Source of the DNA: Octopus sinensis
Taxonomy: Eukaryota
Assembly (NCBI RefSeq): GCF_006345805.1
Contig: NC_043016.1
Location: forward strand, 26,040,001 to 26,104,000
Direction: 5' to 3'
Length of the DNA: 64,000 bases
The notes under the pieces were generated by a model. The model did no database searches and was not told where the DNA came from. It was given only the letters and a program-made list of their open reading frames with translations. Each line of letters starts with the position of its first letter. The stretch's first letter is position 1. The position numbers and the translations under genes are program-made. This document shows positions 3,231-28,293 of this stretch, one piece after another.

Positions 3231-3326
3231 TTGATGCAAAACAAAGCCAATATAAATGCAATTAATGAACACGGAAACACACCTCTACACTATGCTTGTT
3301 TTTGGAACTATGGTGATATATCACAG
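3231..3326 (+). CDS. ILK: Integrin-linked kinase exon (ankyrin repeat) [32 protein letters not shown]
   Basis: ttttcag acceptor and gtaaat donor, phase 0/0; matches ILK [14 protein letters not shown]. Confidence 0.96.
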
Positions 3327-4244
3327 GTAAATAAAAATCTATAATTTTATGCATTTTTTTTAATTATCTGATCTAAATGTATTATTTATTCATCAAGTTA
3401 AGTTTCCTTATGCTTGTCCACATCTCTGTGCTCTAATTGTCAAGTTTATTTTTTAATGTGAGCTAATGGGATAATATGGATTAGTCAAATAATAAATTAA
3501 ATGGATGGTCACTATTATAGGATAATAATTTGGAAACTTGGAAATTTAGCCGGCATAAAACTTAATCATTTTACTATTAGCTAATTGCATTGTTCTGTAA
3601 TAATGGTTTCAAAGTTTGGTACAAGGCCAGGAATTTGGAGGGCATGGTTAAGTTGATCACATTGACCCCAGTATCCAACTGGTACTTATTTTATTGGCAC
3701 CAAAAGGATGAAAAGCAACGTCCACCTTGGCAGAATGTGAACACGGACTGTTAAGACGGATGAAATACTGCTGAGCATTTTGCCCGGCATGCTAATGATT
3801 CTGCCGCATCACCATCTTATCACTTTTCTGTTTTAATAGTTAAGAAAATTAGAGGCACTAGCATGACTGTGTGCTTAAGAAGTTTACTTTACAATAACTT
3901 GACTTCAAGTTCAGTTCCAATGCTCAGTATCTTAACTATTACCCCAGACCATCTAATGCCCTTTGAATAAATTTGATTGAGGGGGAAACCCTAGTAAGTT
4001 GATGTATGTTCACAGAAAGACATATGAAGTTACTCGATTTGACAAACAAGTGTTTATTTAAGACTTTGTAATAAATTATTCCCTCTAATTACTCCTGCTC
4101 AATTTTCTAAAGAATCTTCTTACTCTTCAAGCACTTTGTACTCACTGCCCATATTTCATTGTCATATGCTATCATATATATATTATATACACTCCGTATT
4201 GTTCTCTACATACAACACTACAAATCTTGTACATATATTAATTT

Positions 4245-4475
4245 AGTCCTTATTGCCCACAGGGGCTAAACATAGAGGGGACAAACAAGGACAGACAAAG
4301 GGATTAAGTCAATTTCATTGACCCTAGCGTGTAACTGGTACTTAATTTATTGGCCCCGAAAGGATGAAAGCCAAAGTTGACGTCAATGGAATTTGAACTC
4401 AGAATGTAACGGCAGATGAAATACCGCTAAGCATTTTGCCCAGCATACTAATGATTCTGCCAACTCGCCACCTTT
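4245..4475 (-). mobile_element. SINE family B copy (GAGCTGGCAG...CTGAGTTCAAATTCC...GGGCAATAAAGAAAT). Other copies at ~3620-3810, 12160-12350, 12720-12860, 28350-28510, 29270-29475, 39400-39620
   Basis: Recurrent sequence with a B-box-like GAGTTCAAATTCC. Confidence 0.8.
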
Positions 4476-5184
4476 GTAATTTAATCCTGCTCACTTGCTT
4501 TACATTCCCCTACATTTTCCACGCAACTCATAAAACTTCTTTACGTTCATTATACATTTTACACTGACATACAACAGCACATCTTCTTTGCTTGTCATGT
4601 CATCATCTATATTCATGTCATGCACCATCAAACATTTCACATAATCTTCCATATATTTACTGTTGACATGTCAAATATAGTCATTTTTGCTTGTATATAC
4701 TATATTAGAATTTCTATTGACAAGACTACTCAAGACTTCTTACTATCTTAAATACCTGCCACAATGCTAAGAGTAGAGTGAATCCACACTATAGTCATGT
4801 TATTTAGATGGTGTAGAACCTAATACCTCTAGTGAACTATCAGAGTTCTCCATAGTCTTCAATCAATGGTTAGTAATAATTATAGCTATTTTATTGCATC
4901 TTGTGTAACAAAAGAATCTGATAGCCTGTCAGATAATCAAGTAAATTTAATTCCTTTTAATGATATATACAAAAAGCTTGTCATAGTCACCTGGGAAAAT
5001 ATGTAAATGTTCAATACAAGTGGGGAAGTAAAGGAATTTGATTAGTATAATCAGAATATGATTCTCACATTTTGATAGATGAATGAAAGACAAGATAAAC
5101 TGAATAGAAATCTGTTAATTAGTAACCTATATAATTTCTGAGAGATGTCTCTTTTATGAATGACACACCTGTAAAGTACTCTTC

Positions 5185-5480
5185 TGAAGTGGTTAATGTA
5201 TTCGGCCCATGATTGTAAGATCATGAGTTCGATCACTGGTAGTACATTGTGTCCTTGAGCAAGACACTTTATTTCACGTTGTTCCATCTCATTCAGCTGG
5301 CAAAAATGAGCTGTACTTGTATTTCAAAGGGCCAACCATGTCACATTCTGTGTCATGCTGAGTCTCTCTTAAGAACTATATTATGGGCTCCTATGTCTGT
5401 GGAGTACTCAGCCACTTGCACATTAATTTCACAAGCAAGCTATTCCAATTGATTGGAACCCTAGTCATTGTCACCAACAG
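5185..5480 (+). mobile_element. tRNA-headed SINE family D copy. Others at ~34680-34950, 44155-44650, 54335-54640
   Basis: GTGGTTA..GTTCGATC head plus the recurrent body CCTTGTCACATTCTGTGTCATGCTGAATCTC. Confidence 0.7.
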
Positions 5481-6343
5481 AGTGCCAGTTATATATAGTG
5501 GTGGTGGAGGTAGTAATACTGTTTAGTCCCAGATCAGCTCCGATTAATCAAACCTATGATAAAAGATGTAACAATCCATTCATTTTGTATACCATGGACT
5601 ATTTTGTTCAGAGTTTCCTTCATTTTTTTTTCTAAAATGAAGTGTGGGTTTGGAGAGATTTGGTTGCTGTGTCTAACAGGTTGAGGTTCCCTTGTTGACT
5701 GATGGGACAGAGGATAGTACTGGTGGTGGTAGTGGTAGTCATTATTACATACAGCTGCTAGCTCCTGTGAACATTTAAAGGATTAATACACCAACAACAG
5801 GATGTATAGTTTTCATAATTATATGTAGATGTGTTTCATAAAAGAGAGTTCATCTGTTTATACTTAAGACTGTTAGCTTACAATTTGGGTTTCATTAATT
5901 TCATCTCATCTTCGTTTTGTATTGGTATACATTGGACAACCTATCAGTTATCTATTATTTAGTCACACTAGCTGACCCTATGCCATCAAAAATGACAGCT
6001 AATTGTAGTATTTTATATATAAATAAGATACAAAATAAGGTACATAATAATCACTCATACAAACATTCGCATACTTCCCTTGTACACACACACACACACA
6101 TACATATGTGGTGCACCTGAGCACTGTATACAATAATTTCATTATTATATACTCACAGAGTTGAAACATTGATTTTTTTCACCCCTTCCTTCCTTATTCA
6201 TCTATCACCCCTTCCTTTCTCTCATTGCTATTACTTTCTCTCACTCCCTCTCAGTCAAGGGCTATTACTCTTACTACTTCTCCTTCACTGGATTACTATT
6301 TTCTCTCCTCCCCTGTGTCCAGTGTGATTCTGGACAAATATAT

Positions 6344-6730
6344 ACTCTTTTACTTATTTCAGTCATTTGACTGCGGCCATGCTGGAGCACCACCTTCAGT
6401 CGAGGAAATCGACCCCAGGACTTATTCTTTGGAAGCCTAGTACTTATTCTATCAGTCACTTTTGCCAAACCGCTAAGTTACGGGGACGTAAGCACACCAG
6501 CATCAGTTGTCAAGCGATGTTGGGGGGGGACAAACACAAATACACACACACATATATATACATATACATATATACGACAGGCTTCTTCCAGTTTCCATCT
6601 ACCAACTCTACTCACAAGACTTTGGTCAGCCCGAGGCTATAGTAGAAGACACTTGTCCAAGGTGCCACGCAGTGGGACTGAACCCAGAACTATGTGGTTG
6701 GTAAGCAAGCTACTTACCACAGAGACACTC
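6344..6730 (-). mobile_element. tRNA-derived SINE family A copy
   Basis: Reverse complement of the family A sequence seen at 37169-37560. Confidence 0.85.
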
Positions 6731-7128
6731 TACATATACGCAAATATATAAAAACATTATGCTCATTCTTATATTAGGAGATTGTATGTGTGCTAGTAAG
6801 CACACATACAGTTGCTGGAATGGTAATTAATTGACACATTTACAAACCATGCTTGCCTAGAAAATAAGAAATTATTATTTTTAACCATTTTGCTAGCATA
6901 TTTCTGCTGAAATTATCACTTGCTTTGTTTCTGTTAATTTTGAAAATAATGAAGAATTTAGTATAATAGTTCTGTTGTTTTTAAATTTTGGAACATAAAT
7001 TAACACGAAATTTTGATGGAAGGTTTTAATTCAGATTACTTTAGAAAAGTAAGTTTAGGGTGGTCTCAGGTGGATTGGTATCAGGTGAATGGTTGAAAAG
7101 TAATGTTGTTTGATAATTTAAATTGCAG

Positions 7129-7225
7129 GATCTTCTTAATATGGGAGCCCAGTTAGGCATTGCAAATATCTTTGATGAAACACCTTTGGATAAAGCAAGA
7201 CCAGCTCTCAGACAAGTTTTAAAAG
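7129..7225 (+). CDS. ILK: ILK exon DLLNMGAQLGIANIFDETPLDKARPALRQVLK
   Basis: aattgcag / gtattc, phase 0/1; matches [31 protein letters not shown]. Confidence 0.95.
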
Positions 7226-7519
7226 GTATTCACTTTGTGTTGTTTTTTTAATTTATTTTTCATGTATTAAAAACCATGAGTTTTTGGCTTTTACCTTGTT
7301 TAAGCATTAAAAAAACTGTCATTATCATTGTTGTCATCATCATCATTTTGATGACTACTTCTCCATGCTTGCATGGGTCACTTCTGAGATTTTAGATTGA
7401 CAGTGATTGTTGTACCATTTCATCTGTTAATTTTTCATCACGCACGCATACACAAACAAATACAGAGAGAGAGACAGACAGACAGAGAGAGTCATTTCTT
7501 CACTTTGATTCATCATTCT

Positions 7520-7734
7520 TTAACCCTTTAGTATTCAGATTGCTCTGAATACACATTATTTTGCATTAATCATGGATTATCTCATAGTTTTGAGACTTCG
7601 ATGCATGGTTGTTTAATTTTAGAGTGACATTGTAGGGTAGGTGTGAGAGGCCAGATCTGAACAGTTTGATACATAAAATTGGTTTGATACCTAAACTTGG
7701 GCCAAATTTGGCTGGTTTAAATGCTAAAGGTTTA
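7520..7734. mobile_element. piggyBac-like MITE (TTAA + CCCTTTAG TIR). Copies at 16462-16674, 26123-26350, 57637-57862
   Basis: TTAACCCTTTAG...AATGCTAAAGGGTTAA-type termini and a shared internal CACACCTACCCTACAATGTCA. Confidence 0.75.
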
Positions 7735-7812
7735 CAGTTCAACTGCACAATCAAAATATTTACATTTCCATATATTTACAGTTATTATTTTTACTTTTTT
7801 TTTTCTCTTTAG

Positions 7813-7893
7813 ACCGTGCTGTTGAATTAGCTCGAGATCTAAAGAAGATTCCTTTCAAAGATCGAAGTTGGCTTGGTAGTAAAACCCGCAGTC
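7813..7893 (+). CDS. ILK: ILK exon (D)RAVELARDLKKIPFKDRSWLGSKTRS
   Basis: ctctttag / gtaagt, phase 1/1; matches RIPYKDTFWKGTTRTR. Confidence 0.95.
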
Positions 7894-8264
7894 GTAAGTA
7901 TTATATTGCATCTGACCACAACACATTTTTGTCTTCTGTCTTAAATAATCACAAACTTTCAAACTGTTGTTTCATACCAAGAGATATTTAAAAATAGTTA
8001 AAATAAATCATAGAAAATACCATAAACATAGTTATATGTTTTTTACTTGTAAGGAATCATCATTATTGGATTGGTAAAGTTATTAAGTGTGTCAGACAAA
8101 ATATCTTCCTGCATTTTTTCTGGCTCTATGTTCTGGGTTTGGATCCCACCAAAGTCAGCTTTGTCTATCATCATTCTAGGGCTGATAGAAATTATGTGCA
8201 AGTAATGTACTGGAGTCAAATGATATTGACTAGCTTCCTCACCTAAATTTCAGGCTTTGTACAC

Positions 8265-8670
8265 AGGCTTACGAGTGGCTGTGTGGTAAGTAGCTTGCTT
8301 ACCAACCACGTGGTTCCAGGTTCAGTCCCACTGCATAGCACCTTGAGCAAGTGTCTTCTACTGTGGCCTTGGGCTGACCAAAGCCATGTGAGTGGATTTG
8401 GTAGACGGAAACTGAAAGAAGCCCGTCGTATATATGTGTATATGTGTGTATATATATATATGTGTGTGTGTGTATGTTTGTGTGTCTGTGTTTGTCACCC
8501 CAACATCACTTGACAACCGATGCTGGTGTGTTTACATCCCCGTAACTTAGCGGTTCGGCAAATGAGACAGGTAGAATAAGTACTAGGCTTACAAAGAATA
8601 AGTTCTGGAGTCGATTTGCTCAACATGGCCACAATCAAAATGACTGAAACAAGTAAAAGAGTAAAAGAGT
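8265..8670 (+). mobile_element. SINE family A copy
   Basis: GTGGCTGTGTGGTAAGTAGCTTGCTTACCAACC...TGACTGAAACAAGTAAAAGA. Confidence 0.85.
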
Positions 8671-8914
8671 ATATGCTAGAAAATAATTATTTTTATTGAA
8701 AGTAAAAAAAGTGCTTGAAACTGGAGATAAGAATTTTTCTAAGTGAGATTTAGTATTTAGGTATTTATGTTTTATTAGTAATTTGACTGAAGAGTTAGAG
8801 GTTGTATATTGTTTAGCTGTTATTCTAAATGCTAGCGATTAAAAAATCTACTGCATTAACATTAGAAATTGTTTCAATTCATTTATTGATGTAAAATTAT
8901 CTTCAACTTTTCAG

Positions 8915-9000
8915 GAGATGCTACATTATCCAGATACACTGGTATTAAGTGTTCGCAACTGAAGCTTGCACATGTACTTGCCAACACCCATTCAGGACGT
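8915..9000 (+). CDS. ILK: ILK exon (R)DATLSRYTGIKCSQLKLAHVLANTHSGR
   Basis: ttttcag / gtaagt, phase 1/0; contains the degenerate Gly-loop equivalent of NENHSG. Confidence 0.95.
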
Positions 9001-10202
9001 GTAAGTATTAACTTAACTATTAAAATCCAAGGTAAATTTGATTTTTATGGGTTTTGTCAGAAGGATGGCACAATCACTTTGATGTTGATGTGATTAGTGT
9101 TGCCAAAGTTTGGAATTTGATGTCTGTAAAACAAAAAACTTTGTCAAGAAGGGAATTTCAGTGGGATGCTGATATTGAGAGTGGGTATGCAAGTAACAAG
9201 TTCTGATGATCAGAAGCTTTTGTTGTAGCAGTAGAAGATATAGAGTTAGGAGTCTACAACATTATGAAGCCTGGCCTTGTGAGTGGATTTCACAGATGGA
9301 AACTGAAAGACTCTCGGTGTGTGTATGTGCATGACAGGCTTCTCTTTGGTTGGCGTCTTCCCAGTCTACTCACAAGGTTTTTGATTGATTTGGAGTTGTA
9401 GTAGAAGACACTTGCCAAAGTTGCTATGCAATGGGGCTGAAAATGAAAGCACATGGTTCGCAAGCAAGCTTCTTTATTAAAATTTTTTCAGAAATGCTAA
9501 TTATAATTTGTGATTAAGACACATGATCTTTAGCCCACCTCTGTATATTAGTGGCTGGACTCATTTTGAAACCACCATGCCTGAAACCTCCAGTACAAAA
9601 CCTCTCAATTTAAAAATTTCATATTCAAATTTAACTTAATCATAATTTCATCTAAGACCATCTTTTTTATCTTGTTCCAAAGAACAACAGAATGTTATCA
9701 TCATCACAATTGTCATTTCAATGCCCATTTTCCATGCTCAGATGAGATGGGTCAGACACAATTTGTTGAGGCAGATTTTTTTTCTATGAAGATACCCTTC
9801 TTGCCACCAAGCCCTACCTATTTCCAAGTAAGGTCATATTTCCACATGACTAGACATGTTTTTCATAGAAGATTAAGAGCAAAGGACACCACTTGCTTGT
9901 CACTTGTTTACAACTATCATGTGATGTCGAAGCAAAGAGACAGTTACACACACACACACATCTATATGACAGGTTTCTTTCAGTTTGTCTGCCAAATCCA
10001 CTCACAAGGCTTTAATCGACCTGGGACTATAGTAGAAGACATCTACCCCATACTGGCCAAAATATTAATTATTTTGATATATCTTTGCAAATTCTTGATT
10101 ATTTACATAACAATGTAATGAATGGTATTAGAAATATGCTAATGAAAACATTAAGTTAATGCAATTAATGGTCACAACTGTTTGATTTTGTTTTTATTTT
10201 AG

Positions 10203-10312
10203 ACATTGCAAGGTGTTTGGCAGGGGAGTGAAATTGTGGCCAAAGAATTAAAACTGAGAGAGTGTACTTTAAGAATGTCTCGTGATTTTCAAGAAGAATT
10301 TCCTCGATTAAG
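10203..10312 (+). CDS. ILK: ILK exon [36 protein letters not shown](R)
   Basis: ttttag / gtaagg, phase 0/2; VAK lysine (human K220 equivalent) and SRDFxEExPRLR. Confidence 0.96.
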
Positions 10313-11199
10313 GTAAGGATCAGAATCCCAAAGTTCCTGCTATAAATGCTTCCAAATAAATGCATTTTTTAATATCTTATAGAAGATTAAGTTGCACAAA
10401 TTATTTGAACTTTTATTACACTCACTTGCTAGTTATATATTGTTTTAGAAATATAGCATACACTTAGAATATGTCAAGGAACTTACAAAGTTTTATTGAG
10501 AATGGAAAAATTATAGAATTATGCAGAATCAATTTCCAATATGGGCCCGAAGTTTGCTGCCTTATTTGTACACTATTCTTATCATCCACATCATCATCAC
10601 CATCACTGTCATTCTTTCTATTATTCTTTTAGTGGTTTCAGTCATAGGAATGTGACCATGCTGGAGCACTGCTTTAATTTATTTTCTTTGTCTTGTTGTT
10701 GCTTTATGACTAGAAGTTGGGCTATGACTGAGTTTGTAGTAGCTGATCTTCCATGAGTGAATCTTTGAATGATTTGTTTGTCTAGTATCATTGTTAGGAG
10801 TTTATCCAGTGTTTTTTTTTTTTAATGTTTCACTTGAGACCCATCTTATATTTCTGATTTCTTATGGGAGGTGGTTGAACAATTGGGAACTAAATATCAG
10901 ACAAGTACAATAATGTTTTTTGCTCATGATTTCGAAGGGAGTATATTTGGAAGCTGATAGTATCTACCTGTTCATGTATCATCACCATCATTTTGACATC
11001 CATTATTTTCCTTGCTGGTAAAGGTTGAATGCTGTAATCCCACATATTATCACTCCAGTAAAGTCCCACTCAAGTACTGGGGTCAATGGTATTAACTAAC
11101 CCCTTTTCTCTCAAAATTACCAGTCTTGTGCCTGAATTAGTAACCATTATTTTAGTAACTATGCATCTCAACACTGTGTTTGTGACTAATGCTGTTATT

Positions 11200-11950
11200 G
11201 ATGTTACTAATCCTGTATATGTGTGTTTCTTAAGTTTATCAAGCGAGAGATAACATTGATGGATGTTGTAGTGTTCTGTAGTATTGTAGATGTGTTTCAG
11301 CGATGGAGGTGACTGTACATATAGTGTCAGAGACTTTGGGGATGGAAGCTGCTTGCTGCAGCAATAAACTGTGCTCATCTCATGCCCTGGTGGTCTTTGG
11401 CTCTATTGTGCTGGTGTTCAGTGGGTATGGACTGCGTGTAGCCTGTGGTGATATGTTGTGTTCTATTTTAGAGGTTTTGTAATTTGTTGTGAATTCTAGG
11501 CAGGCTTTCAATACTCTCTGATGGATCTAATGTATTGTTTGTTTGCTAATGTTGTTGTTTCTTTCTGTTGGTCAAATACACATGGTTTTGCTTACTTTAC
11601 TATGTCTTCTCTGTGTTCCGGTAGTGTTGCAAAAATGTAACTCTTGGAATTTCTTTTCTTCTGTGTGTGTATATGTATGTATAGGGTATGTTTATTATCA
11701 TTGAGTGGGATTGTCAGTCAGTCATGATGTTCTTTGAGATTGTTGTAGAGAAGGGAGTCAGTGGATTTGGTTAGGTAATTGATTCCAAAAAAAGAGTAGG
11801 TGAAAGAATTGGACCTTGTGGTACTTCACTTGGAGAAATAACAGATATCAAATGTTCTGTTGTTATATTCTACACAGGCTTGTCAACCTGATAGATAGTT
11901 TGCTGGTCAACATTTTATATAGTAGAAGATATTGAATATTTAATCTTTAA
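11200..11950 (-). mobile_element. Decayed non-LTR retrotransposon RT fragment (CR1/L2/Jockey-like)
   Basis: The - strand near 11790-11835 reads SEVPQGPILSPTLF, resembling the GVPQGSxLSPxLF RT motif. The rest is heavily degenerate and boundaries are approximate. Confidence 0.5.
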
Positions 11951-13784
11951 GGTGGTTAAATTAGCAAATTCTTTAGAGTTTTGGATAAAATGTCTGTTAA
12001 TAATTGTTCTGACTTCTGTCTGTGCTTTGGGTTCAAATCACACCAAGGTCACCTTTGACTTTCATCCGTTCAAGGTCAATAAAGTCAGTACTAATCTAGG
12101 TGGTGCACTAGCAGAACAGCCATAACATTAAACTTGTAGTATTTGCTCTTGTTCAAGGCAGCGAGCTGGCAGAAACGTTAGCATGCTGGGCAAAATGCTT
12201 AGCAATATTTCATCTGTCTTTATGTTCTGAGTTCAAATTCCGCCATGGTCGACTTTGCCTTTCATCCTTTTAGGGGTCGATAAATTAAGTCGATCTAATC
12301 AACTGACTCCCTCCCCCCAAAATTTCCAGCCTTATGCCTAGAGTAGAAAAGTATTTGCTCCTGTTCTTTGCATTCTGAGTTCAAATTTCATCAAGGCCTA
12401 TGACCTATGAGGGCAGTAGATTTTTATCTTTTACCCACTTGAAAAATAAAACACCATCTAGACACATTAGGTGCCTTGCAAGCATTTGGGATCAAGTCTC
12501 TGATTTGTGTATACCTTTTTTCTTAACTCCCTCATACCAGTCTTGGAGGTTCATTTCCACTGCATTTGGTTTGGATGTAAAAATTTTTAAATAAAAAAAT
12601 GTGGTTTATTGGGATAGATTTGAAAGTTTTGCTGATGATAGAATGATGCAAATGAATCTTATTATTAAAGCAATTGTCTATTCTTGATTTAATAATATTC
12701 ATGTATAGTGTTTGGATTAAATGTTGGATATTTTACCAACCCTGAAAGGATGAAAGGCAAAGTTGACCCCAGTGGCATTCAAACTCAGCATGTTAAGACA
12801 GACAAAATGCTGCTAAGAATTTTTCCCAGTGCTCTAACGATTTGGCCAGCTTGCCACCTTTAAATTTTCTAAATATCATAAGGATGCACATAGGAAGAAG
12901 TATCTTTGGAATTTGTAGTGCCAGTTTAAATAGTTCTAGATGTTGTTCGGGGTTCCAGTGATTCTTTCAATCTTGAGTATATGTTTGTAACTCTGTCAGA
13001 TCCTAGGGCTTCTGAGTTTAAGGATTTTCATATTGTCTGATGAATATAAACTATCAAAATTATGGTCTAAGTGCAACACTCTAATTAAAATATATAATAA
13101 AATTATTTAATTGAAATATAAATTAGATTCATTATATTTTTTGCTTTTGTCTTCACATTCATTAACATAAAAATGTTTCTTCCTAAATGGAATGTTCTCA
13201 ATTATGTCGTAAACTGAAGTTTTATTACAGAATAAATATAGGGAAATAGGGATTAAATAAAATAAGGCGAATATCTCTTTAAGCTGTCTACAGAAATAGA
13301 ACCCAGTTATTGAAATTGTTCAGTTGATATTTTAGTAATCTGTATAGGTTGTTTTACATTTCTTATGAGCAGTACAATTTGTAAATCTAAAGTATCTTAC
13401 CAATTGTTTTCAGTGTGTTAATCACAAAAAATGAAGATACATTATCAATGATTTATTTAGTTTACAAATGTTTTGAATAGTTTAGCACAATGCGACTGCT
13501 ACACATTATGGTTTTCTTATTTAATCAGTATTTCATTTGATCAATTAATTAACTATGTTAACTTTGTGAAGAATAGTTTGGTAATCAGCAGCTCTGTACT
13601 TCTGGCTAATTTATTGATCAAATGAAGAAATGATTAGATGTGCAAATTGCAATGTGCACCAATTGAATTGTGCTAAACTATTTGAAACATATGTAAGCTA
13701 AATATATCATTGATAATATGTCTTCATTCTTTGTTTCATATAAGTGTACATATATATTCTGATATTATATTCTATACTTTTCAG

Positions 13785-13906
13785 GATATTCAACCATGCC
13801 AATATTCTACCTGTTTTGGCCTGTTGTAATGAACGTCCTAACTTGGTCGTTATTAGTCAGTATATGGTCCATGGATCACTCTATAATGTCCTTCATGGAG
13901 AAACAG
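13785..13906 (+). CDS. ILK: ILK exon (R)IFNHANILPVLACCNERPNLVVISQYMVHGSLYNVLHGET
   Basis: ttttcag / gtaaat, phase 2/1; GSLYNVLH motif. Confidence 0.97.
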
Positions 13907-15690: not shown

Positions 15691-16703
15691 TAAGCATTTT
15701 GCCTGATGTGCTAACTATTCTGCCTGTTCACTTCTCTGAATATTATTATCACATTGTAAGGTAATGAGCTGGCAGAATTGTTACCATACCAGGAAAAATG
15801 CTTAGCAGCAATTTCTCTGATTTTATGCTCTGAGTTCAAATGCTGCTAAGGTCAGTTCTGTCTTTCATCCTTTCATGGTCAATAAAGTAAGTACCAGTTG
15901 AGCAATGGAGCTGATGTACCCCATCCCCAAACTTGCTGGTCTTGTACCAAAATTTGAAATTGATGTTATGGATCACTTAGCACATTAGGCAAAATGCTTA
16001 GCAGTATTTCGTCCAGCTTCACATTAAGAGTTCAAATTCATCTATGGTTGACTTTACCTTTCATTCTTTTAGAGTCAATAAAAATAAATTCTAGTTGAGC
16101 ATCAGGGTCAATGAAATAATTCCCTGAACTTGTTGGTCTTATGCCAGAATTTGAAACCAGTGTTAATGTCACACTGTTAGGAGAGGAGGAGAGATTGAAT
16201 ATATCAGCTAATGCTTCCAATCAAATATTTTAATCAGAAACACCAGTCAAATGTATCGACAGAGCCAACACATTGCAGGTTGGTTTGAGGTTATGATGCA
16301 TAGAAGGCTGCTTATTTGCAAGCCTATTTTCAAAACAAAACTAGTAGGAAAAAAGTAGATGTAAAACCAGAGATGATGAGAGTCTTTTCTTCTTCATATT
16401 TTTACTTTAATATTTTCACCACTGTTGCATGGATCATAATGATATTTTGTTTAAAAGGGCTTTAACCCATTAACATTTAATCTGGCCATAACAAGTCCAA
16501 ATATTCTAACTTTGTGTTAAAACTGACCAGATCCAACTTCTCACACCTACCCTACAATTTCAATCTGAAAATATACCAATTTTGAAGCTACAAGACAATG
16601 CATGATTAATTCAAAGCAACATGAATAAATAAGCATTGCATTTGACAGAGGAATTTGAATGCTTAAAGGATTAATGAAAATTTTATTTTCTATTTTAAAA
16701 TAG

Positions 16704-16825
16704 ATATTGTTGTTGATCAAAACCAAGCATTGAGATTTGCTCTGGATATTGCAAGAGGTATGGAATTTCTTCACTCCATGGAACCCATGATACCAAATAT
16801 TGCTCTTAACAGCAAACACGTCATG
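16704..16825 (+). CDS. ILK: ILK exon (D)[40 protein letters not shown]
   Basis: aaatag / gtaagt, phase 1/0; pseudokinase catalytic loop ALN in place of HRD. Confidence 0.97.
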
Positions 16826-17542
16826 GTAAGTTGATTTTTTTCATGCTTCTTTTCATAATAAAACCATCACTGAGCCTTCATTTAAAATTCATCTCATTTC
16901 ATATCAGCTTTCCTCCCACCACAATCACACAGGTATTTAATTAATTTTTATATGGATTATATTTTAAAATTGTACTTAATTTGTTATTGTTATCATACTT
17001 TACAATTCTTAACTGTTTTCTTTCAAAATAAATTTAAGTAAATATTGTTTCTTCCTTGTAAGCATTTACCATCAGATAAAAATTTTCTGCATTGTTTTTA
17101 TATTCAGTATCTTCAGATATTTAATGTATTAATATAAAATACTTCCTATTTATAATCTCTGTTAATCTTAACCATTATAGGAATCATTTAATTAAATGTA
17201 ACTGTTCCTTTATAAATTTACTCTGACTCTTAAAGTCATTATAATGTTCAAACTGAGCAATTTAATAAATTTTAATTGAAACTTAGCAGTTTTCTATTTT
17301 CTTCTTGCTAGAAGTTATTTTCAAATTTTTGCAGCCTCCATATATTTCTTATGACTTGACATAATTAAATAATCATTTACCAATATCAAACATTTGAATT
17401 CATATCCATGTGTGATGAGTTGTCATCATTAATGAAACGTTAGATCAACCTCTTAATGGTGGAGTTCTTTGATTTATATTGAAGTTCTTTCCCTATCGCA
17501 ATCAGTAAATTTCATTACTTTTGTCAGAAACATTCATTCTCT

Positions 17543-17545
<3 letters not shown>

Positions 17546-17624
<79 letters not shown>

Positions 17625-17660
17625 CTATCTCTATCTCCCTCTCTCTATCTCTCTCTCTCT
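17546..17660. repeat. (TC)n/(TATC)n microsatellite
   Basis: Direct reading. Confidence 0.9.
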
Positions 17661-17843
17661 ACTTTCTTTCTTTTGTTCTCTCTCCAGCTATTTCTGTTTT
17701 CCTTTTCTTTCCTCTTTTTTTTATCTATCTATTTGTAGCTTCCTATATATTTGTCTGCATATTCATATCTATCTGTTGTCTAACTGTCTATGTATCTATG
17801 TATTTGTCTCTCTATGTATCTCTTCCTCTCTCCCTCTCATGTA

Positions 17844-17903
<60 letters not shown>

Positions 17904-19357
17904 ATATATTATTATTTATCCTCTAACCTGTTTTACCTAAATATCTATCTCCCTACAATAATGTACCTATCGTTTGTCTTTCTAACCACCTACCTGTCTA
18001 CCTACATGTCTGTGTATCTGTTTTGTCTAACGATTTGTCTGTGTTTCATGTGTTCCTATCTGCATATCAACCTTGTTGCTTAACTATCATTTAGTCTTCA
18101 CTCAGTTTATTCAATCCTACATCCTCACTCAATCCAATATTGCTTTTAGTTCTCAGTATGTATATTATTGATATTAAAACAGTATTCATCATTCCTAAAT
18201 GTACTTGATTAAAATGGAATTCATCAATTCTTAAGAAGAGAAAATAATTGCCATCAGCTGTGTCCCTGTCAGTACTAACTTATCCAATAATCGTTTTAAA
18301 ATGAATTAATTAAATATATCATTTCACCTTTCTGATATAAATAGTGGTGTTAATACTTATGGTCTCATGAAAAGGTAAATAAATTTTAAAATTATTTCAA
18401 ATAAATGATTTCTCATAATACTTTTCTTAAATTAGATTTAGTTCTGCAACATGTCAATTACATTTTAACTATTATTTCAAAGAAATGATTGATTATTACA
18501 AGACAAAAAATTCCTTTAAGTATGAATAATACAATTTTTTTTTTATAAAAATTATTAAATGATGTTTCATATAATTTTGAAAAGATTTTTTTAATGTAAT
18601 TTCTTGAGTAAATACATAAATTTGTTTGATTAATTAATAATTATTATTAATTAGCTATACATCATATAACATCAGTGTTAGTTTATTTTAAATGTCTTCT
18701 TTAGCTACAAATACCTAGCAATTTCCAGCACCTTTGAATATATCCTTTTACCTCTACTCACTCCCCAGACATGACACATGTCTTCTTCAAATGTAATACT
18801 TATTTGCTCCTGTATACCCAACAAAACTTGTGGCACAAGGTTTTCAGTTTGTCACCAATTTTCTTCCGATTTCTATTCCCCCAGGAGACATGTGACACTA
18901 AATGACAATTTTTTTCACTATTTTTCTTTTATCTCTACCCACCACTTTTTCCACATGTAACACTATATTACTTTACATATTGTCGCCTGCCACTAGCATC
19001 CACCTCCCAACGCAATAAGTATAGTACATTATTATCTAGTCTTGTGTCTTCTGGTCCTACATGATTTTTTTTTCTTTTGTCACGTGTGGTCCTACAAGAG
19101 TTTTCTTTTGCCACATGCAATATCATCATTAGCTTGTCTAGTTCCTTGTAGGAACATGCACACCTATGGTATTAGGACCACTTCTACTTAACCCCTCCCA
19201 CCACATGCAACCATTATCACTTGTTCCTCCCTCTACATGCCCAACATCTCATAATTACTAATCCCCTTACCACTATTACCACAAACTTGTTGTTATCAGC
19301 ATCATAAGCATCATCATCATCTTGATCATCATCATCATCATCATTGTTTGATCTCTT

Positions 19358-19392
<35 letters not shown>

Positions 19393-19457
19393 TGCTCTTT
19401 CTCTTTCTCTCTGTGTGTTTGTGTGTGCGTGTTTGTGATAACTATGTTCTGTTTTAG

Positions 19458-19529
19458 ATTGACGAAGACCTGGCTAAGATAAATATCGATGATCCTAAGT
19501 ATTCTGCTCGGGATGTCGCAATCAATGGG
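19458..19529 (+). CDS. ILK: Putative alternative ILK exon IDEDLAKINIDDPKYSARDVAING, a paralogue of exon 36608-36707; read-through stop at 19566-19568
   Basis: gttctgttttag acceptor, phase 0, compatible with the upstream exon; GTAACA donor at 19530; 10/16 aa identical to the canonical exon, with synonymous differences. Confidence 0.65.
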
Positions 19530-20743
19530 GTAACACAACATATTTGTTTTTGTGCCTGTGTGTTATGACTATTACTATGGTTCATGCAGTTTTAGTTGAC
19601 CATTTGCAGCCACCACTCTGCCAAACCACTAACCTTTTTTTACTTACATACATACTAACACCTTATAGTACTGATGTAGTTATTATTATTATTATTATTA
19701 ATATTATTATTATTATTATTACTATTACTATTACTATTACTATTATTAGATACCATTGCAGTTAGTAGAGCTTTATTTTATTTTATTTTATTTTATTTTA
19801 TGTATTTATATATTTATATTATACTGAATTTTTTTTGTACATTTCCTCACCACCAGCACTCTCAATTCCTTTAGTATTTTAATTCTTACGGCTGTTTTTG
19901 CTAATGTCTTAGACAGAAATTGCTGGTTGCGATAGCTCAATCACAATTATTGCCATTTTCTTTTCTTTTCTTTTTGTTTTATCAACCTTATTATTATCAG
20001 AAATATAATTATCAATGTTATTATTAGTAAATTTTTTAAATTTAAAAAATTTCTATTCCTATCTATTCTTTACAGATAGTTTATGGATGCTATGACAAAG
20101 AGTGTGTGTGCGTGTGTATATATGCGTGCACTTGTGCACGCACTCATATGTGTTCCTGTTTTTAATGCATCTGTAATATATTAAAGTGTTGTACTAAGAT
20201 AATTGAAATTACCTAGTGTAAAAGATATTGGTCTGCCAGTTTTTATTTTCAAATCTTCTGGGAGGATTTTGCTGTGTTTCTAACACTACAGGCTTCTTCT
20301 TTCTGGTTTCATATTCAGTCCTACTGTGTGTCATATTTAGCTTATGTTTTCTATTATAAGCCCTAGGCCAACCAAAGCTTTGTGAATGAAGTGTGTGTGT
20401 GTGTGTATTTTACAGTCTCCTTGCCTTGATGTAATTTAATGATTCTAAGTGTCACTGTCATGCAAGTGACATCTTTTGTTTCTCATCTTCGGTGGTGTCT
20501 GGTCATAAGGAAATATTACCTTTCTTGGAAACAGGTGAAGGTTGGCAACAGAGGAGCATCTGGCTGTAGAAAATCTGCCTCAACAAATTCTGTTTGAGTC
20601 ATGTGAAGATGAAAAAGTGGATGTTAAATGAATACACACACACACACACTCATGGTAAAACAAACAAATGATAGATACATGCATATATATGTATATGTAT
20701 ACGTGTGTATGTGTGTGTATATATATATTTACACACATATACT

Positions 20744-20776
<33 letters not shown>

Positions 20777-22427
20777 TGGATCTTATATATTTATGTAAAC
20801 ACATATATGTATGTCATTCATTTGTTTTGGCATTTAAGTATTTCTCCTTTAATAAGTCTTTGTCTAGCTCATGCTGGCATGGTTTGACTGAATAGTTATG
20901 AATACTTATGAATAGGCAATGTTTTATAGTTAGATGCCTCAATTTTGGCTAATTTTTGCCTACATTCAAGTAAGGGCCTTTTTTTTTTATTTCACTTATT
21001 TTTAAAAGTTAGGAAATGTTACTATAACATCACTGATTTTTGCTCACCACTTTCATTTGAAAATGTGGAATGCAAACATTCATATCAGCATACACCTACC
21101 ACAAGCTTCCCTACAGTTTTCATCTACCAAATCTCTCACAAGACAGCTGTAGAACACATCAGCTAAAGGCACCATGCAGTTTGATAGTATTCAAAACCAG
21201 GTGGTTACAAGGTGCACTCCATAATCACACAGCCATGCCTATGCCAATTCGACACTAACAAGTTGTATAAAGGCTTGTATACAATATATATATATTGTAG
21301 ACATGTGTATTTGATTTTACTTATATGCGTCTATTCTTGTTGTTCATTTACTGGTATTACATTGGAAATTATATATTTTATATTCCTTATTTTACCATTT
21401 ATCAAATTGTTCAAGTTGTTTCTATCAGTGATTATTCCTGGAAACTGTTCACTTCCCTCTACTGTTTCTAAAATCAGTTTTTACAAACTTTAAACTTCCA
21501 GTATATATATGTTTAGATATTGAATGTGTTTATGTACCTGTGTGCATACACATGAATGCAAATATTTATGCACAACATACTTGTACATATAGTATATAAC
21601 TGCATAGTTGAAATTTTTGGAATTTGTGGTCAGAAGAGACAAGCCAAAATTGTACATATTTATACATTGGTCTGTGTGTGTGTGTGTGTAAAGTGTACAA
21701 TGTGTGTTATGTGTATGTATATTGTGATCCTGTATTCTGTTGCAAGTATAAAATAATGTCCTTGATTATTACTTACCCTGATTTCCTGTCTTTACTTAAC
21801 TGAAAAATAGCTACCATAGCATTGCTTATCAAGTACATTTGTTTCTAGAAAATACATTTAGTCATAATCTCAGAAAATATATTCTTGAATTGTAAACCGT
21901 TTAAACAAATCCTTTATTAAGTACAACCTAATAAGACGTGTTCATGTGTGTTTCCATATATGTGTATGTGCGTGTGTGTGTATGTGTGTTAAAGGTATAT
22001 AAAATTATAGATCCATTGCAGCTGGCCTTACTGATTGGCTGTTGTGGATCTTATAATACTGCATGCTTTAATTAATATACTTAATGTACTCTATTGACAA
22101 ATAAACAAATGCCTATTTTTACTGACTTATGACTTCTTAAATGACTACATACACAGTTACATTCACACACACATAGTTACATTAACACACACACACACAC
22201 ACATAGTTATATTCACATGCATAAATAAATGCCAGAAATAGACTAGTTTAAGTTATAACCCATGATGGATATAAAATTATCAAAACTCAACTATCAGAGC
22301 CCTCATTATTCCTTACTGCATTAGATTTTAGTTCATTGAAAGATTTGAAATATTTTTTAAGAATGTAAAGAACAACAAATTTTTTTAAATCTTTTGATGC
22401 ATCGAGCAATATGTTGGTTTCATCTAT

Positions 22428-22812
22428 TACTCTTTTACTTGTTTCAGTCATTTGACTGTGGCCATGCTGGAGCACCGCCTTTAGTCAAGCAAATCGACCC
22501 CAGGACTTATTCTTTGTAAGCCTAGTACTTATTCTATCGGTCACTTTTGCCGAACCGCTCGGTTACGAGGACGTAAACACACCAGCATTTGTTGTCAAAC
22601 AATGTTGGGGGGACAAACACAGACACACCCATACATATATATACATATATATGACTGGCTTCTTTCAGTTTCCATCTACCTAATCCACTCACAAGGCTTT
22701 GGTCAGCCCTAGGCTATAGTAGAAGACACTTGCCCAAGGTGCCACACAGTGGGACTGAACACGGAACCATGTGGTTGGTAAGCAAGCTACTTACCACACA
22801 GCCACTCCTATG
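22428..22812 (-). mobile_element. SINE family A copy
   Basis: Full-length reverse-complement match to family A. Confidence 0.85.
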
Positions 22813-23470
22813 CTTATTGTTACTGAAATTAAACAGTTTGATGCAAAATTATATTTATTTGAATGGAGGTTGTTTCTGATTTAGATTATTTGTTCTCTAT
22901 ATAAAATTACTTTCAGAATAATCTACTGTATGTTATTTGAAAATATTTTGGTTTTAATAGTCATTCATAATGCTTTCCTTAATTGAGAGCAATTAATATT
23001 TTGTTAGTTCTGGTTTGTGTTTGTATGTCTGCTCAATTTAGGTCAAATTGTCAGCCAATGGAAGAACAAAAAAATTTGCCAGATTTTTAACTGAATATAC
23101 AATTATGGCATTGTTATTTATTCTGCCATATTATTTGAATGTTAGAATATAATTTTTGTGATGCCATTTTATTGTTTTCTGTGCAGAACATGAATGATGT
23201 CAGCAGTAAATATTTAGTGTCGAATTATTATTAATAATTTATTTTTACCTTGTTTGTATCACCTGGAATTCTTTTTACCTTTGTACATATGAACATTTCA
23301 AATTGGCTGCAAGAAAAAAAAAAGAAAGTAACCATCATGACTGTTATTGAATAATAATTTTAAAATAGATTGGAATAATGTTTTATAAACGTATATCTGC
23401 TTCTTAAAATGGTATTGTGTGTTGGTAGAAGAAAATACATGCAATAGATAAAAACCAAAACAAAACTATA

Positions 23471-24285
23471 CACTGCATCCCACATTATTAGGCAAATCAA
23501 CCTTCTCTCAATGAATAAATGTATATTCATTCAAAACCAGTTGTTTTCCCTCTGACTTTTGGCAACACCTATCTGTGCACATTCTGTTAAAATAAATCGG
23601 ATCTGCACAGATGAAAACAAACAGTGGCCATTATTGTATAGCAGCAACATTTCTGCTGTCTCAAATTATTAGGCAGGTGCATAATTTAAGTGTCATTATG
23701 GGTCAGAAATGTGAACTTACCTTGAATGAGCAGTTTACCAGTGTGTCAGAGCTTGGAAAAGGGAAAACAGCTATAGAAATATCAAAAATACTGGGAAGAG
23801 ATTACTAAACAGTGAAGAAATTTGTGCAGTCTCCTATTTCTGTCTAGTCGAGAACAGATAAAAATAAGTCGAGCCTTGCTTCAAATCATACTTTGTCTCA
23901 TGTGAAAAGGGAAGTTGTGAAGAACCCATGTCCAACATGTAGAGAAGTTTTCAAATGGGGCAGGGAAGACATATCGAAAACTACCAGGTGTTGCCCCTTG
24001 AAGTAGGTAGTTAGGAATGTTAAACCTGTTACAAGGTTATGTTTTCACCATCACAAATTATTTCACTGTCACAAATTATTAGGCAAATATAATAAAAATG
24101 ATAATAGTTGCCCAATCACAAAAAATGGCCACCATTTGTTGGCATCGGCACAGCTCCGATTCATTTTAACAGAATGTGTGCAGATGGGTGTTGCTAACAG
24201 TCAATGAGAAAACAACTGGTTTTGAACGAATATACATTTATTTATTGAGAGAAGGTTGATTTGCCTAATAATGTGAAACATTATA
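23471..24285 (+). mobile_element. Internally deleted Tc1-like transposon
   Basis: TA + CACTGCATCCCACATTATTAGGCAAA TIR, long inverted arms, inner ATTATTAGGCA repeats; 23699 onward reads MGQKCELTLNEQFTSVSELGKGKTAIEISKILGRDY*TVKKFV (paired-type HTH). Confidence 0.8.
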
Positions 24286-24359
24286 TACATACATGAAAAT
24301 ATAAATATTATTGAAATAATATTAATACACCTGCTTCATATATTTATATATATATATAT

Positions 24360-24702
24360 AAACAATTGCAGCATGGAAGGTGTTTGTAAGCCATTTAAGA
24401 AACACACAAAAACCGTTCGATTCACTTCAACATTTAAGTTTAATTTGTCAAAATATTTTCGTCGCTAAAATCCGCGACCTGTCACTGACAAAAATCCATG
24501 CAGCACGGATTTTTGTCAGTGAACAGGTCGCGGATTTTAGCGACGAAAATATTTTGACAAATTAAACTTAAATGTTGAAGTGAATCGAACGGCTTTTGTG
24601 TGTTTCTTAAATGGCTTACAAACACCTTCCACGCTGCAATTGTTTTCGTTCCAGCACATGATCTCAGATCAAATCACTTGCTATGCGAGTACATCTACGT
24701 AA
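24360..24702 (-). mobile_element. Second copy of the (TA)n-embedded foldback element
   Basis: Reverse complement of 2593-2937, flanked by (TA)n on both sides. Confidence 0.88.
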
Positions 24703-25141
24703 TATATATATATAATGCAAATAAGTAACAAGGATGTCCAGGTAACCGAACTGGTTTGTGAGATGGTATGTTTAACATTAAGATTACTCTATCAAATGTA
24801 ATACTTATTTATTCACATTGTTTTCAGTTTATCCTGCATTATTTTGTAGTGTTGAGATTTCAGTGATGTGACTGTATATTTTTTAGACTAACAGTGGACA
24901 GTAGATGTGAGAGGCTGGATCTGGCCAGTTTGAACATCATACAGGGAAAATATTTTGACTGGATATTGCTAGTTTAAATGCTAAATGATATGTAAAGATA
25001 TGCTGTACTTGAGAGCTGTCCAAATTAGACATTAAAAAGATAATTAAGATGATGAAAATAATAATATTGGATTGATTGACAGAAAGTATGTATTTATTAA
25101 AGTTGTGTGTGTGTGTGTGTGTGCATATGCATGTATCCATA

Positions 25142-25191
<50 letters not shown>

Positions 25192-25194
25192 ATC

Positions 25195-25369
25195 CAAACA
25201 AGAAAACACAACAATGCGAGGATGTGGAACAAATATAGTATTATTGGACGCTCAGGAAAGAAGGAGGGTTTAACGTTTCGAGCGGAGCTCTTCGTCGGAA
25301 ACATAGGAGAAGGAAAGATCCAGAGAAGGGAAGACAGAGGGAAAAAATCGCCAACGGTACATACAAGGT

Positions 25370-25376
<7 letters not shown>
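25195..25376 (-). mobile_element. Penelope-like terminal-repeat fragment containing a minimal hammerhead-like motif (25268-25302)
   Basis: - strand reads GTTT-CCGACGA-A-GAGC-TCC-GCTC-GAAA-CGT-T-AAAC. Confidence 0.55.
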
Positions 25377-25400
<24 letters not shown>

Positions 25401-26965
25401 GAGTCTGTTTCAAAATATGAAAGGTTTTTCTAAAAATTATTAATTTTAAACAAAACTTTTTAAATATTCTCTTAAAATATGAAGCATGTTATTCATGAAG
25501 AGGAAGAAAAAAGAAAGCTTATAATTTGAGTGAACTTAATATAACTATGTAAGAATATTTCTTCTCTACATTCTTTGTATGAAAGTGTGTGGCTTAGTGG
25601 TCAGGGTATCAAGCTCATGATCATTGGTTGGGGGATTCAATGCTTAGACCAAGTAGTATGCTATGTTCTTGAGCAAGGTACTTGAAGAAGGTAGTATGCT
25701 ATGTTCTTGAGCAAGGAGGTACTTGCCTTTGCTCCAGTTTACTTGGCAGAAGCAATTACCAGCTGTGTGCTAATGGAACCCTGCCACCCTCTATCTCTAA
25801 TATCCAACATGTTCTTCTGCTGGGTAAAGGCCAAGAAAGTCAAAACAGTATCTTTTCAACTTGTGACTATGTAGGCACCTACAACAATTAGCAAAAAAGA
25901 ATGGTACTTGCTGCCAAGCTGTATTCACTTACAAATGACAGCAGGCTGTATTTACTAACAGCACATACTTATCACATAGAATATGAAGTATAATGTCTTT
26001 CTATCCATTGCATTTATAATGAGCAAAAATATACTTATAAATGAAATATTAGTATGCCATTGAATGTGCTCCTAAAGGTTTAGTATGTTAGAAATTCAAA
26101 ATAAATAAAGAACAGTTGTTCTTTAATCCTTTAGCATTTAAACCAGCCTTGTCTTTCTGAAGTATTCTACCTGTTATATGTTCAAACTGACCAGAACCAG
26201 CCTCTCACACCTACCCTACAATGTCATTCTGAAAATAAATAACCACATCATCAAAATTCCAAAGCTATGAGACAATATAGGATTAATTCAAAGCAAAGTG
26301 AATAAATAAGTATTAAATTTCACAGAGTAATCTGAATGCTTAAGGGTTAATTAAAGGTGGCATACAATAATGAAATATTCTCCAAAACCTGATGACTGGA
26401 TATCTGAAGGGACAATATGGTAGCTGAAGATATGATATCACCTATTATTTATATTGTTTGTTAACAATAACAACAACAGTAATACAGATAAAATAGATGA
26501 TTATTATTGTTATGGTTATACTGTCCCCCACCTGTCATTTCTGTTCTATGCATGATGACATGTTTTGTAATTGTTTTATTATAAGGCTTGTTATAAAATT
26601 ATATATCCTTCTCCCTTAACATATACATTTGGTATGTATATATGTGCGTGCATATGTATTTACACATACACACAGATACACACTCAAACACACTTATTAA
26701 AGCTGCAAAAACATCACAAAAATATCACTTCTCAGAGTTTCATGATCAAACAGTTGTGATTGAGAACCACAATGTGTGTATGTATGTATGTATGTGTGTG
26801 TGTGTATATATATATATATATACACATATGTTAATAAAATAGAACATATGCATATATATAAACATATATGTACGTACCTACCTCTACATGTACATATATA
26901 CACGCAAATATGTGTACAGGACACCAACATACATATACACATATATATCTATATATGCATATATA

Positions 26966-27515
26966 TGGTGGCTGCCCCCTCGTTATCAAGTATGGCCATT
27001 GCACGAAGCTTAATGTTGTTATTGTGCAATGCCTGTGCAAGAAGATTTTTTTTTAAAGTGAGGAAAGGCTGTGCACTGAGTCAATTCGACTCACTAAGCA
27101 ACAGCAGCCATAATCCGAAAAGAAGAACAAGTCAACATCATTGGTAACCACTGAGCCGCAGGTTTTATGTCGGAGTTATCCCAGTTACCTGAGTTACCTT
27201 CTAGAAGGATGCCCTAACAAAGGCTAGGAGTCCTTCACTCCCAATGGTTTAACCGCACGATCGGGTATTCAGTCCGATTATTTCTATGTCCCCACGCATG
27301 ATACATCCTTAAAACATTTATAGGATGGCTGTTGACTCTCAAAAGTTCCTCCGCCCTTGACGGGCTTTGTTTTTCATCCCGCAGGGTGTCCAATAAATAC
27401 CCTCCTCACAAAGCAAGCTTGGTGGGGTTGCCGGTTTAGTCACCAATGACCCGAACATGCAACAGGTTGTACTGGGTTACATGTTACCAGTAGCACTCAA
27501 AAGTGACCTGACATA
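26966..27515. mobile_element. Unclassified GC/CpG-rich ~550 bp insert between microsatellites
   Basis: Sharp compositional contrast with the flanks, no long ORF, bounded by (TA)/(TACA) repeats. Confidence 0.5.
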
Positions 27516-27987
27516 AATATATATATATATACATACATACATACATACATACACATACATATATATCTATATATGCATATATATACACACACACACACAT
27601 ACATATATATATATACACACACACATACACACACACTCACATTTCTGCTGTGATATGTATTCCTGTGAATGTATTGTGCAGTGTGTGAAGTGACTGACTT
27701 CTAAATTTCAACTATTATCCCAGATTACACTACTGCCTATGGTTTTCTTTATTGCTAAAAGCTTAGTGACTGTGTGCATATGTGTGTGTGTGTGTGTGTG
27801 TGGGAAAGATAACTTTTTGTTTTTGTTATTTCCTTTTTGGGGCTGTTTCAATCCAGCTTTATTGATTTTAACTTTGTAATTTTATGATATTTTTTGTTGT
27901 TGTTATTGTGTTTGTTTTAATTTGTGCAGTGCAGTTGTTGTTTACATTTTTTTGTATATATTACTGTTGTTGTTGTTGTTGTTGTTG

Positions 27988-28046
<59 letters not shown>

Positions 28047-28258
28047 TATATATATATATATAGCTATTGTTTGCATCTTGTTGTGGCAATACAATCTTGA
28101 TGAATAAAGTTCACATTGCAGTTTCCTTTCCAAGTTTGTTTATTCTGCTGGTGCTATTGGAAAAGCCATGAATGTTGTAACATCCCTTTCTCCACTTCCT
28201 ATAAGTCTGCAGTTTCTTACCTGTGCAACAAACCATTATTATTGAATTTTACTATTCG

Positions 28259-28293
<35 letters not shown>

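Follow-up and report, generated by a model that had tools for sequence, protein, structure and literature searches.

The window analysed here is a 64 kb stretch of Octopus sinensis DNA (64,000 nucleotides; contig NC_043016.1, positions 26,040,001 to 26,104,000), which carries most of the ILK gene on its forward strand. Within one of its introns, a short segment at 19458-19529 (+) was identified that is, with high confidence, a conserved alternative cassette exon of octopus ILK, the inclusion of which gives isoform X1 of 474 aa and the skipping of which gives isoform X2 of 450 aa. The exon is 72 nt long, is in phase 0/0 and encodes IDEDLAKINIDDPKYSARDVAING, a 100% match to residues 324-347 of X1 (XP_029648883.1). 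Its acceptor at 19458 reads tgttctgttttag/ATT and its donor at 19529/19530 reads GGG/gtaaca. When the 60 residues around the insert were obtained by splicing 16825 to 19458 and 19529 to 36608, the top match was 100% identical and was RefSeq XP_029648883.1 (ILK isoform X1, Octopus sinensis, 474 aa). The whole spliced product of the window, cassette included, is identical to residues 86-474 of this protein, with nothing differing between them. Isoform X2 (XP_029648884.1, 450 aa, also present in O. vulgaris) skips the cassette.

In the annotation, X1 and X2 differ by this cassette, which is hence neither hidden nor novel. An earlier note on this DNA, made from the letters alone, had presented it as a hidden exon of a candidate novel isoform, a view that falls with the existing annotation of X1 in O. 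sinensis and many other species. The same note had described the sequence accurately (phase-0 acceptor, 72-nt open segment and a stop ending at 19568), and among the usages it had considered, an in-frame 72-nt cassette adding 24 aa before the canonical exon is the one borne out, the spliced product being RefSeq X1. Annotated cassette isoforms exist for O. sinensis, O. bimaculoides, Argonauta hians, Acanthosepion pharaonis and some 30 further lophotrochozoans. The 90% cluster of X1 contains the O. sinensis X1 and X2, the X1/X2 pair of O. bimaculoides and an X1-like protein of Argonauta hians. In orthologue models of X1, such as XP_014769821.1 (O. bimaculoides), XP_011444702.1 (Crassostrea gigas) and XP_013399637.1 (Lingula anatina), the cassette core and its point of insertion are those of the octopus protein. 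Literature searches with the peptide, with ILK exon duplication and with ILK splicing in molluscs and Aplysia retrieved no paper on the cassette or testing it. Its biology appears to be unstudied, the isoform being known at the level of annotation through automated gene models. The cassette itself is real, strongly conserved, ordinary in kind and already annotated.

Distribution and transcription of the cassette

A total of 39 retrieved proteins possess the cassette, with the consensus IDEDLAKIN[IVF]DDPK[YF] followed by 6-12 variable residues that usually end in Gly, for a total length of 21-27 aa. Over core positions 9-15, which are those not imposed by the retrieval pattern, 38-39 of the 39 proteins are identical, save position 10, which is Ile, Val or Phe. 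Seventeen further proteins of 255-512 aa (mostly 471-477 aa) match the insert region at 51-85% identity. Pairs of X1 and X2 proteins differing by 21-27 aa at the cassette site were found in Octopus, Argonauta, Liolophura, Pomacea, Physella, Haliotis, oysters, Mercenaria, Owenia, Tubulanus, Lineus and Lingula, and more such pairs lie inside clusters with a short-form representative. Besides the cephalopods, the cassette is distributed in gastropods (Aplysia, Littorina, Biomphalaria, Patella, Haliotis, Plakobranchus, Pomacea, Physella and Elysia), bivalves (Mizuhopecten, Mactra, Tegillarca, Saccostrea, Mya, Solemya, Sinanodonta, Mytilus, Crassostrea, Ostrea and Mercenaria), the chiton Liolophura, annelids (Ridgeia, Lamellibrachia and the early-branching Owenia), nemerteans (Tubulanus and Lineus) and the brachiopod Lingula. 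Presence in related species had been proposed in the earlier note as a check on the segment, and it was found present and in frame across cephalopods and other lophotrochozoans.

No form longer by 24 aa was found in the clusters opened for arthropods and chelicerates, Priapulus, cnidarians including sea anemones, a sea cucumber, hemichordates and amphioxus, and a word-based search of the insert region returned no cassette outside lophotrochozoans; both results are absence of evidence only. The insert appears to be restricted to this group. Two proteins with unusual inserts were also observed. In the monogenean flatworm Cichlidogyrus casuarinus (L008, GCA_045687925), ILK protein P0316 has at about residues 330-355 a divergent insert of ~26 aa, VTDDLSHVRITGDEEFDLCPEKRHQL, at the same M/I site. 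It is coded within a single exon and so is constitutive; it may have arisen by an independent insertion, or from a cassette that became fixed and diverged. The 512-aa protein P0018 of Plakobranchus ocellatus consists at this site of the cassette, an in-frame read through the next intron, and then the canonical exon; this model is likely an annotation error and gives no evidence for a read-through isoform.

Transcripts with the cassette were found in relatives of the octopus. Intronless RNA-seq contigs of 1.6-2.5 kb with complete 474-aa frames including the cassette come from cuttlefish-like (L001, SRR25158145; L002, SRR9970001), squid-like (L003, SRR27666065) and oyster (L011, SRR13374875) sources, and an annelid-like contig from a JGI sample (L004) encodes a 477-aa form. 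Their junctions match the prediction from the window exactly (...CAYGTYATG/ATTGA...AAYGGG/ATTGA...). Contigs of the skipping form (P0115, P0021 and P0250) exist in cephalopods and oyster, and both forms are thus seen in relatives. The scallop genome encodes the cassette as an exon of its own, 72 nt long with AG/GT borders. It occupies the same intron in the same phase, ~0.5 kb behind the exon that ends in ...KHVM and 3.6 kb ahead of the canonical exon.

Two points tell against the cassette as an established isoform of the octopus itself. No octopus RNA contig or short ORF (open reading frame) fragment was found across the cassette junctions, the matches being without the cassette or from other taxa; the junctions that the earlier note had predicted are confirmed exactly in the contigs of relatives, and octopus fragments spanning them were not seen. 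The transcript evidence for Octopus consists of the automated RefSeq X1 and X2 models, the supporting reads of which are not visible. The long form is rare in assemblies: the cuttlefish-like cluster has 2 such contigs against 104 of the short form, and Crassostrea has 2 against 285. Numbers of contigs reflect isoform abundance only crudely, and they give a crude sign that the long form is a minor or tissue-restricted isoform.

Gene context and kinship with the downstream exon

The ILK gene was located with tblastn by using a human ILK probe, which served for exon location only. Ten collinear coding blocks were found on the + strand, and the ten AG/GT-bounded exons splice into one open reading frame through to the stop. 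The constitutive exon at 16704-16825 (+), identified by tblastn, AG/GT borders and frame, ends with ...ALNSKHVM in phase 0 and provides the donor for both isoforms; it is 86% identical to Argonauta, where the alignment ends at the exon edges. The intron that follows, 16825-36608, is 19.8 kb long, and the cassette lies 2.6 kb inside it. At the far side of the intron is the canonical constitutive exon at 36608-36707 (+), which was placed by tblastn and splice sites, is 100 nt long in phase 0/1, and carries strand β8, the D-x-[KR] pseudo-DFG motif and APE. It is the parent or a paralogue of the cassette. The tblastn alignment gives it 65% identity to human ILK residues 327-360, and it aligns with human ILK from I327 on in PDB 3KMU/3KMW. 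Its ...NMADYRFS is aligned with human ...SMADVKFS, D-x-K/R replacing DFG and the D339-equivalent Asp being kept.

The remaining exons were assigned from tblastn, splice sites and frame. The constitutive exon at 38962-39092 (+), encoding ALQKKPEE...EIGMK, was located by tblastn and frame and sets the frame that bars mutually exclusive use of a 72-nt exon. The last coding exon lies at 39760-39912 (+) and ends with the stop TAG. Six upstream exons are present at 3231-3326, 7129-7225, 7813-7893, 8915-9000, 10203-10312 and 13785-13906 (+; span 3231..13906). Codons 1-85 fall outside the window, and the spliced window product starts at residue 86 of protein P0001. In this protein, Pfam finds Ank families together with PK_Tyr_Ser-Thr/Pkinase, that is, N-terminal ankyrin repeats followed by a kinase-like domain, and sequence matches in PDB are to the ILK kinase domain (E = 4e-105) and the ILK ankyrin domain (E = 2e-68). 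The octopus product is the ILK/PAT-4 scaffold pseudokinase with degenerate catalytic motifs. By homology to known ILK proteins, it would bind PINCH, parvin and ATP-Mg.

The cassette peptide IDEDLAKINIDDPKYSARDVAING is paralogous to the 17 residues with which the canonical exon begins. Their local alignment has 10 identities and 4 conservative pairs over 16 positions with one gap, differing codons are used at six of the ten identical residues, and the likeness of the DNA reaches 10 nt into the acceptor. These counts agree with those of the earlier note, and its equivalents of D339 and K341 in the cassette were likewise recovered, an Asp and a Lys being aligned to both. With a BLOSUM62 score of 41, the peptide match is the best non-self match in a six-frame scan of the 64 kb. 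A score of 41 is reached by 7-9% of shuffled windows or queries when the whole window is scanned in six frames (p 0.07-0.09), which is marginal, and this is what could be said for a chance likeness or a decaying pseudo-exon that is never spliced. That explanation has a negligible probability given the conservation across phyla, the transcript contigs, the core that is invariant despite synonymous change, and the conserved flanks of the splice sites. Against the ILK protein alone the likeness is significant: 0.07% of 20,000 shuffled cassettes score as high (p = 0.0007), and within this protein the cassette matches best at the exact start of the adjacent exon. The window scan gave no third copy, since weak peptide matches at 29039-29185, 3581-3751 and 43265-43396 are scattered chance alignments.

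The cassette thus significantly resembles the exon next to it, with which it shares orientation and 5' phase, as is found for tandem duplication. As a general class, exons born in this way likewise lie beside a paralogue of equal 5' phase, resemble it in the acceptor and are used alternatively. We propose that the cassette goes back to a tandem duplication in an early lophotrochozoan, which copied the acceptor and 5' portion of the downstream exon, and that since then the 15-residue core has stayed nearly unchanged in front of a tail of variable length, 6-12 residues. Tandem-duplicated exons often turn mutually exclusive. Whereas the usual tandem duplicates are equal in length and mutually exclusive, the ILK cassette is shorter (72 against 100 nt), ends in another phase and accompanies its parent exon. 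Because it is added rather than swapped, the long isoform holds an internal repeat.

Mutually exclusive use, which was another option of the earlier note, could take the form of the 72-nt exon or of a 100-nt version (19458-19557, with GT at 19558 as donor), and it would fit the general habit of duplicated exons. The 100-nt version would also keep the frame with exon 38962. The 72-nt form, however, frameshifts against exon 38962 since it replaces 100 nt, and the donor of the 100-nt version is poor (T/GTGTGT), its counterpart in Argonauta being 95 nt with a broken frame. All 39 of the 39 cassette-bearing proteins also have the canonical segment, and no transcript joining 19529 or 19557 straight to 38962 was seen. 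Mutual exclusion is therefore extremely improbable, and inclusion of the cassette in addition to the canonical exon is the usage we retain.

Selection on the cassette and its flanking introns

Comparison of the 15-codon core among octopus, cuttlefish-like, squid-like and scallop sequences reveals 3-6 synonymous and 0 amino-acid changes per pair, and the annelid-like core has one conservative amino-acid change. The earlier note had read the synonymous differences between the two exons as selection on protein rather than a decaying copy, and this reading is upheld by a core that is invariant in amino acids despite synonymous changes and by conservation across phyla. Where residues are identical, the fraction that also share the codon is 0.57-0.80 in the core and 0.33-0.63 in the rest of the coding sequence, the core being higher in 10 of 10 pairs, with Fisher p values for single pairs of 0.014-0.17. 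This suggests an extra constraint on the cassette RNA, as is common in alternative exons.

Constraint was also found outside the exon. Between O. sinensis-type and O. bimaculoides sequences, a 150-nt segment with the cassette is 99% identical, like a constitutive exon, and the intron mean is 90%. In comparison with Argonauta only the exons align, except at the cassette, where the alignment extends 28 nt upstream and ~64 nt downstream; constitutive exons keep 2-5 nt downstream. The upstream block at 19430-19457 (+) comprises the polypyrimidine tract and the acceptor, TGTYTGTGATAACTRTGTTCTGTTTTAG, and is near-invariant among O. sinensis-type, O. bimaculoides and Argonauta hians sequences. Upstream of 19430, microsatellites included, no alignment with Argonauta is obtained. 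The downstream block at 19530-19593 (+) is non-coding, conserved over ~64 nt between Octopus and Argonauta, and consists of the donor GTAACA and a UG-rich element, TTTGTTTYTGTGCCTGTGTGTTATGAC...GGTTCATGCAG. It is likely splicing-regulatory, and inclusion of the cassette would probably be controlled via the conserved blocks on both sides. A 5-nt indel, a deletion in Argonauta, falls within 19530-19593 and denotes that the block is unconstrained as a reading frame.

This indel bears directly on the option of the earlier note in which the cassette is a terminal exon and gives a truncated ILK blind to parvin. In such a case, transcripts would end after the cassette by reading through into the intron, and the protein, ending in ...INGVTQHICFCACVL*, would keep the ankyrin repeats and lose the C-lobe. 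Read-through past the donor does yield GVTQHICFCACVL up to a TGA ending at 19568, an in-frame stop 39 nt beyond the donor, and the nucleotides there are conserved in Argonauta. The Argonauta deletion breaks the read-through frame, however, showing that the conservation is at the level of nucleotides and that the peptide is not conserved. Moreover, no such truncated protein occurs among the 108 database matches to the region, and the transcript contigs join the cassette to the canonical exon. Termination within or just behind the cassette is thus very improbable, in contrast to its splicing to the canonical exon.

Several further features of the introns were observed. In the UG-rich downstream block, UGUGCCUGUGUGUUAUG, a possible 8-bp stem pairs 19530-19537 with 19559-19566 over the 5' splice site of the cassette, and an A>G change of Argonauta in the putative stem keeps the pair as G-U. 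Statistical support for this stem was not obtained, folding of the cassette and flanks giving z = +0.94 and no covariation. Microsatellites, namely (ATC)n, (TC)n and (TTA)n, lie on both sides of the cassette at 19295-19344, 19352-19412 and 19680-19748; they are present in O. bimaculoides and absent in Argonauta. The earlier note had taken the (TC)n/(TG)n tracts upstream of the acceptor as a sign of regulated splicing, and as conserved regulators they were rejected for their absence in Argonauta, the conserved flanks being the 28 nt upstream and ~64 nt downstream. The ILK introns also contain interspersed repeats in both orientations, belonging to families of ~390 bp, ~215 bp and others, at ~22430-22820, 31178-31559 and 37133-37552; ~16460-16680, 24771-24985 and 26120-26350; 29100-29500 and 39350-39630; and 34300-34650. 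These families have many copies in the ILK locus of O. bimaculoides. Downstream of ILK, a reverse-transcriptase fragment at 62767-63117 (-) with a Pfam RVT_1 match (E = 5e-8) is probably a decayed retroelement, and the neighbouring ORF at 62065-62625 (-) has no Pfam match.

Predicted structure of the insert and its meaning

The HMMER alignment places both IDEDL copies of X1 on human I327-M331, and the insert therefore lies between the equivalents of M326 and I327. This site belongs to the β7-β8 hairpin, from which the chain runs on into the pseudo-DFG (human D339-V-K341). In human ILK, D339 holds a single metal ion and K341 contacts the phosphates of ATP (PMC4718504). Human ILK (Q13418; PDB 3KMW/3KMU with α-parvin) and the octopus protein are alike in having ankyrin repeats and a pseudokinase, with 57% identity in the kinase domain and a superposable fold, and both possess the conserved IDED[LM]TARI.MAD segment with the metal-binding Asp. 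In the human protein M326 is followed directly by I327, the point at which octopus X1 has its insert. The described human isoforms ILK1-3 vary in the N-terminal and ankyrin/PH-like parts and not in the β7-β8 hairpin (PMC8799556).

X1 was modelled with AlphaFold2 (AF2). A first run with a low-diversity alignment of 78 sequences gave a pLDDT of 67, with values <50 over residues 311-375. The alignment was then broadened with about a dozen diverse ILKs from a HMMER search, the results of which were dominated by giant ankyrin-repeat proteins, and the model from the resulting 99 sequences has a pLDDT of 86 and a pTM of 0.79. In this model, β7 spans residues 322-327 and makes use of the IDED of the cassette, a loop with pLDDT <50 spans 328-349, and β8 at 351-357 is formed from the canonical copy with pLDDT 84-88. 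The modelled kinase domain matches human ILK 3KMU/3KMW with a TM-score of 0.95-0.96 and an rmsd of 1.4-1.6 Å, the next best structures, CTR1 and TNNI3K, being far weaker. From this model we infer that the cassette would loop out with the fold kept, which is the reading we prefer. The ILK fold, the C-lobe facing parvin and the canonical β8, D-x-[KR] and APE would stay in place, the first four residues of the cassette would serve as β7, and the remainder would stand out at the tip of the hairpin as a conserved peptide on the protein surface. In a minority of transcripts, and possibly in particular tissues, such a peptide would give the ILK scaffold an added or changed binding surface.

Two considerations weaken the case for a simple loop. 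Two thirds of the sequences in the AF2 alignment are without the cassette, which biases the register of a segment that is modelled at low confidence, and the invariant 15-residue core, resembling β8 and D-x-K, is more than a floppy loop needs. The latter leaves room for a register swap, in which the β8-like strand and the D-P-K of the cassette fill the β8/pseudo-DFG core and the canonical segment is pushed into an activation segment 24 residues longer. Such a swap would alter Mg-ATP binding and the surface facing parvin, and structurally it would equal mutual exclusion with both copies included. It is suggested by the second D-P-K in the cassette and by the canonical residues that the cassette keeps, namely A, I, N, the D339-aligned Asp and the K341-aligned Lys, as well as by its position directly behind ...KHVM, which the canonical copy occupies in X2. 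The conservation of the cassette, moreover, stops directly after the aromatic residue behind D-x-K. Nevertheless, AF2 puts the canonical copy in β8 and the cassette in the loop, an answer that its alignment favours, and the fit to human ILK with the cassette as a gap is excellent. We regard the swap as unlikely, and the looped-out cassette with the ILK fold kept remains preferred.

Within the core, D-D-P-K-Y (X1 334-338; 19488-19502) is invariant and presumably comparable to the NPxY-type motifs of integrin β tails. In MAP kinases, the β7-β8 reverse turn is an element of the docking groove. The same element takes up the cassette in the ILK model, and by analogy it may be a precedent only for this site as a binding surface. 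There is accordingly an outside possibility that the cassette is a structural switch competing with or replacing the canonical β8/pseudo-DFG, or that its DDPKY acts as a docking motif, and that lophotrochozoans have a second, splicing-controlled state of ILK-PINCH-parvin.

The cassette represents a tandem exon duplication with an additive rather than a mutually exclusive outcome. It places, in a highly conserved scaffold of integrin adhesion, a splicing-controlled insert of 24 residues in the hairpin that leads into the pseudo-active site, with a 15-residue core that hardly differs among four phyla (molluscs, annelids, nemerteans and brachiopods). Such constraint implies a specific function, for example as a partner-binding peptide or through an alternative geometry of the pseudo-active site. 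If the switch or the docking reading is true, the long isoform would have altered nucleotide or partner binding, conserved since before the split of molluscs, annelids, nemerteans and brachiopods.

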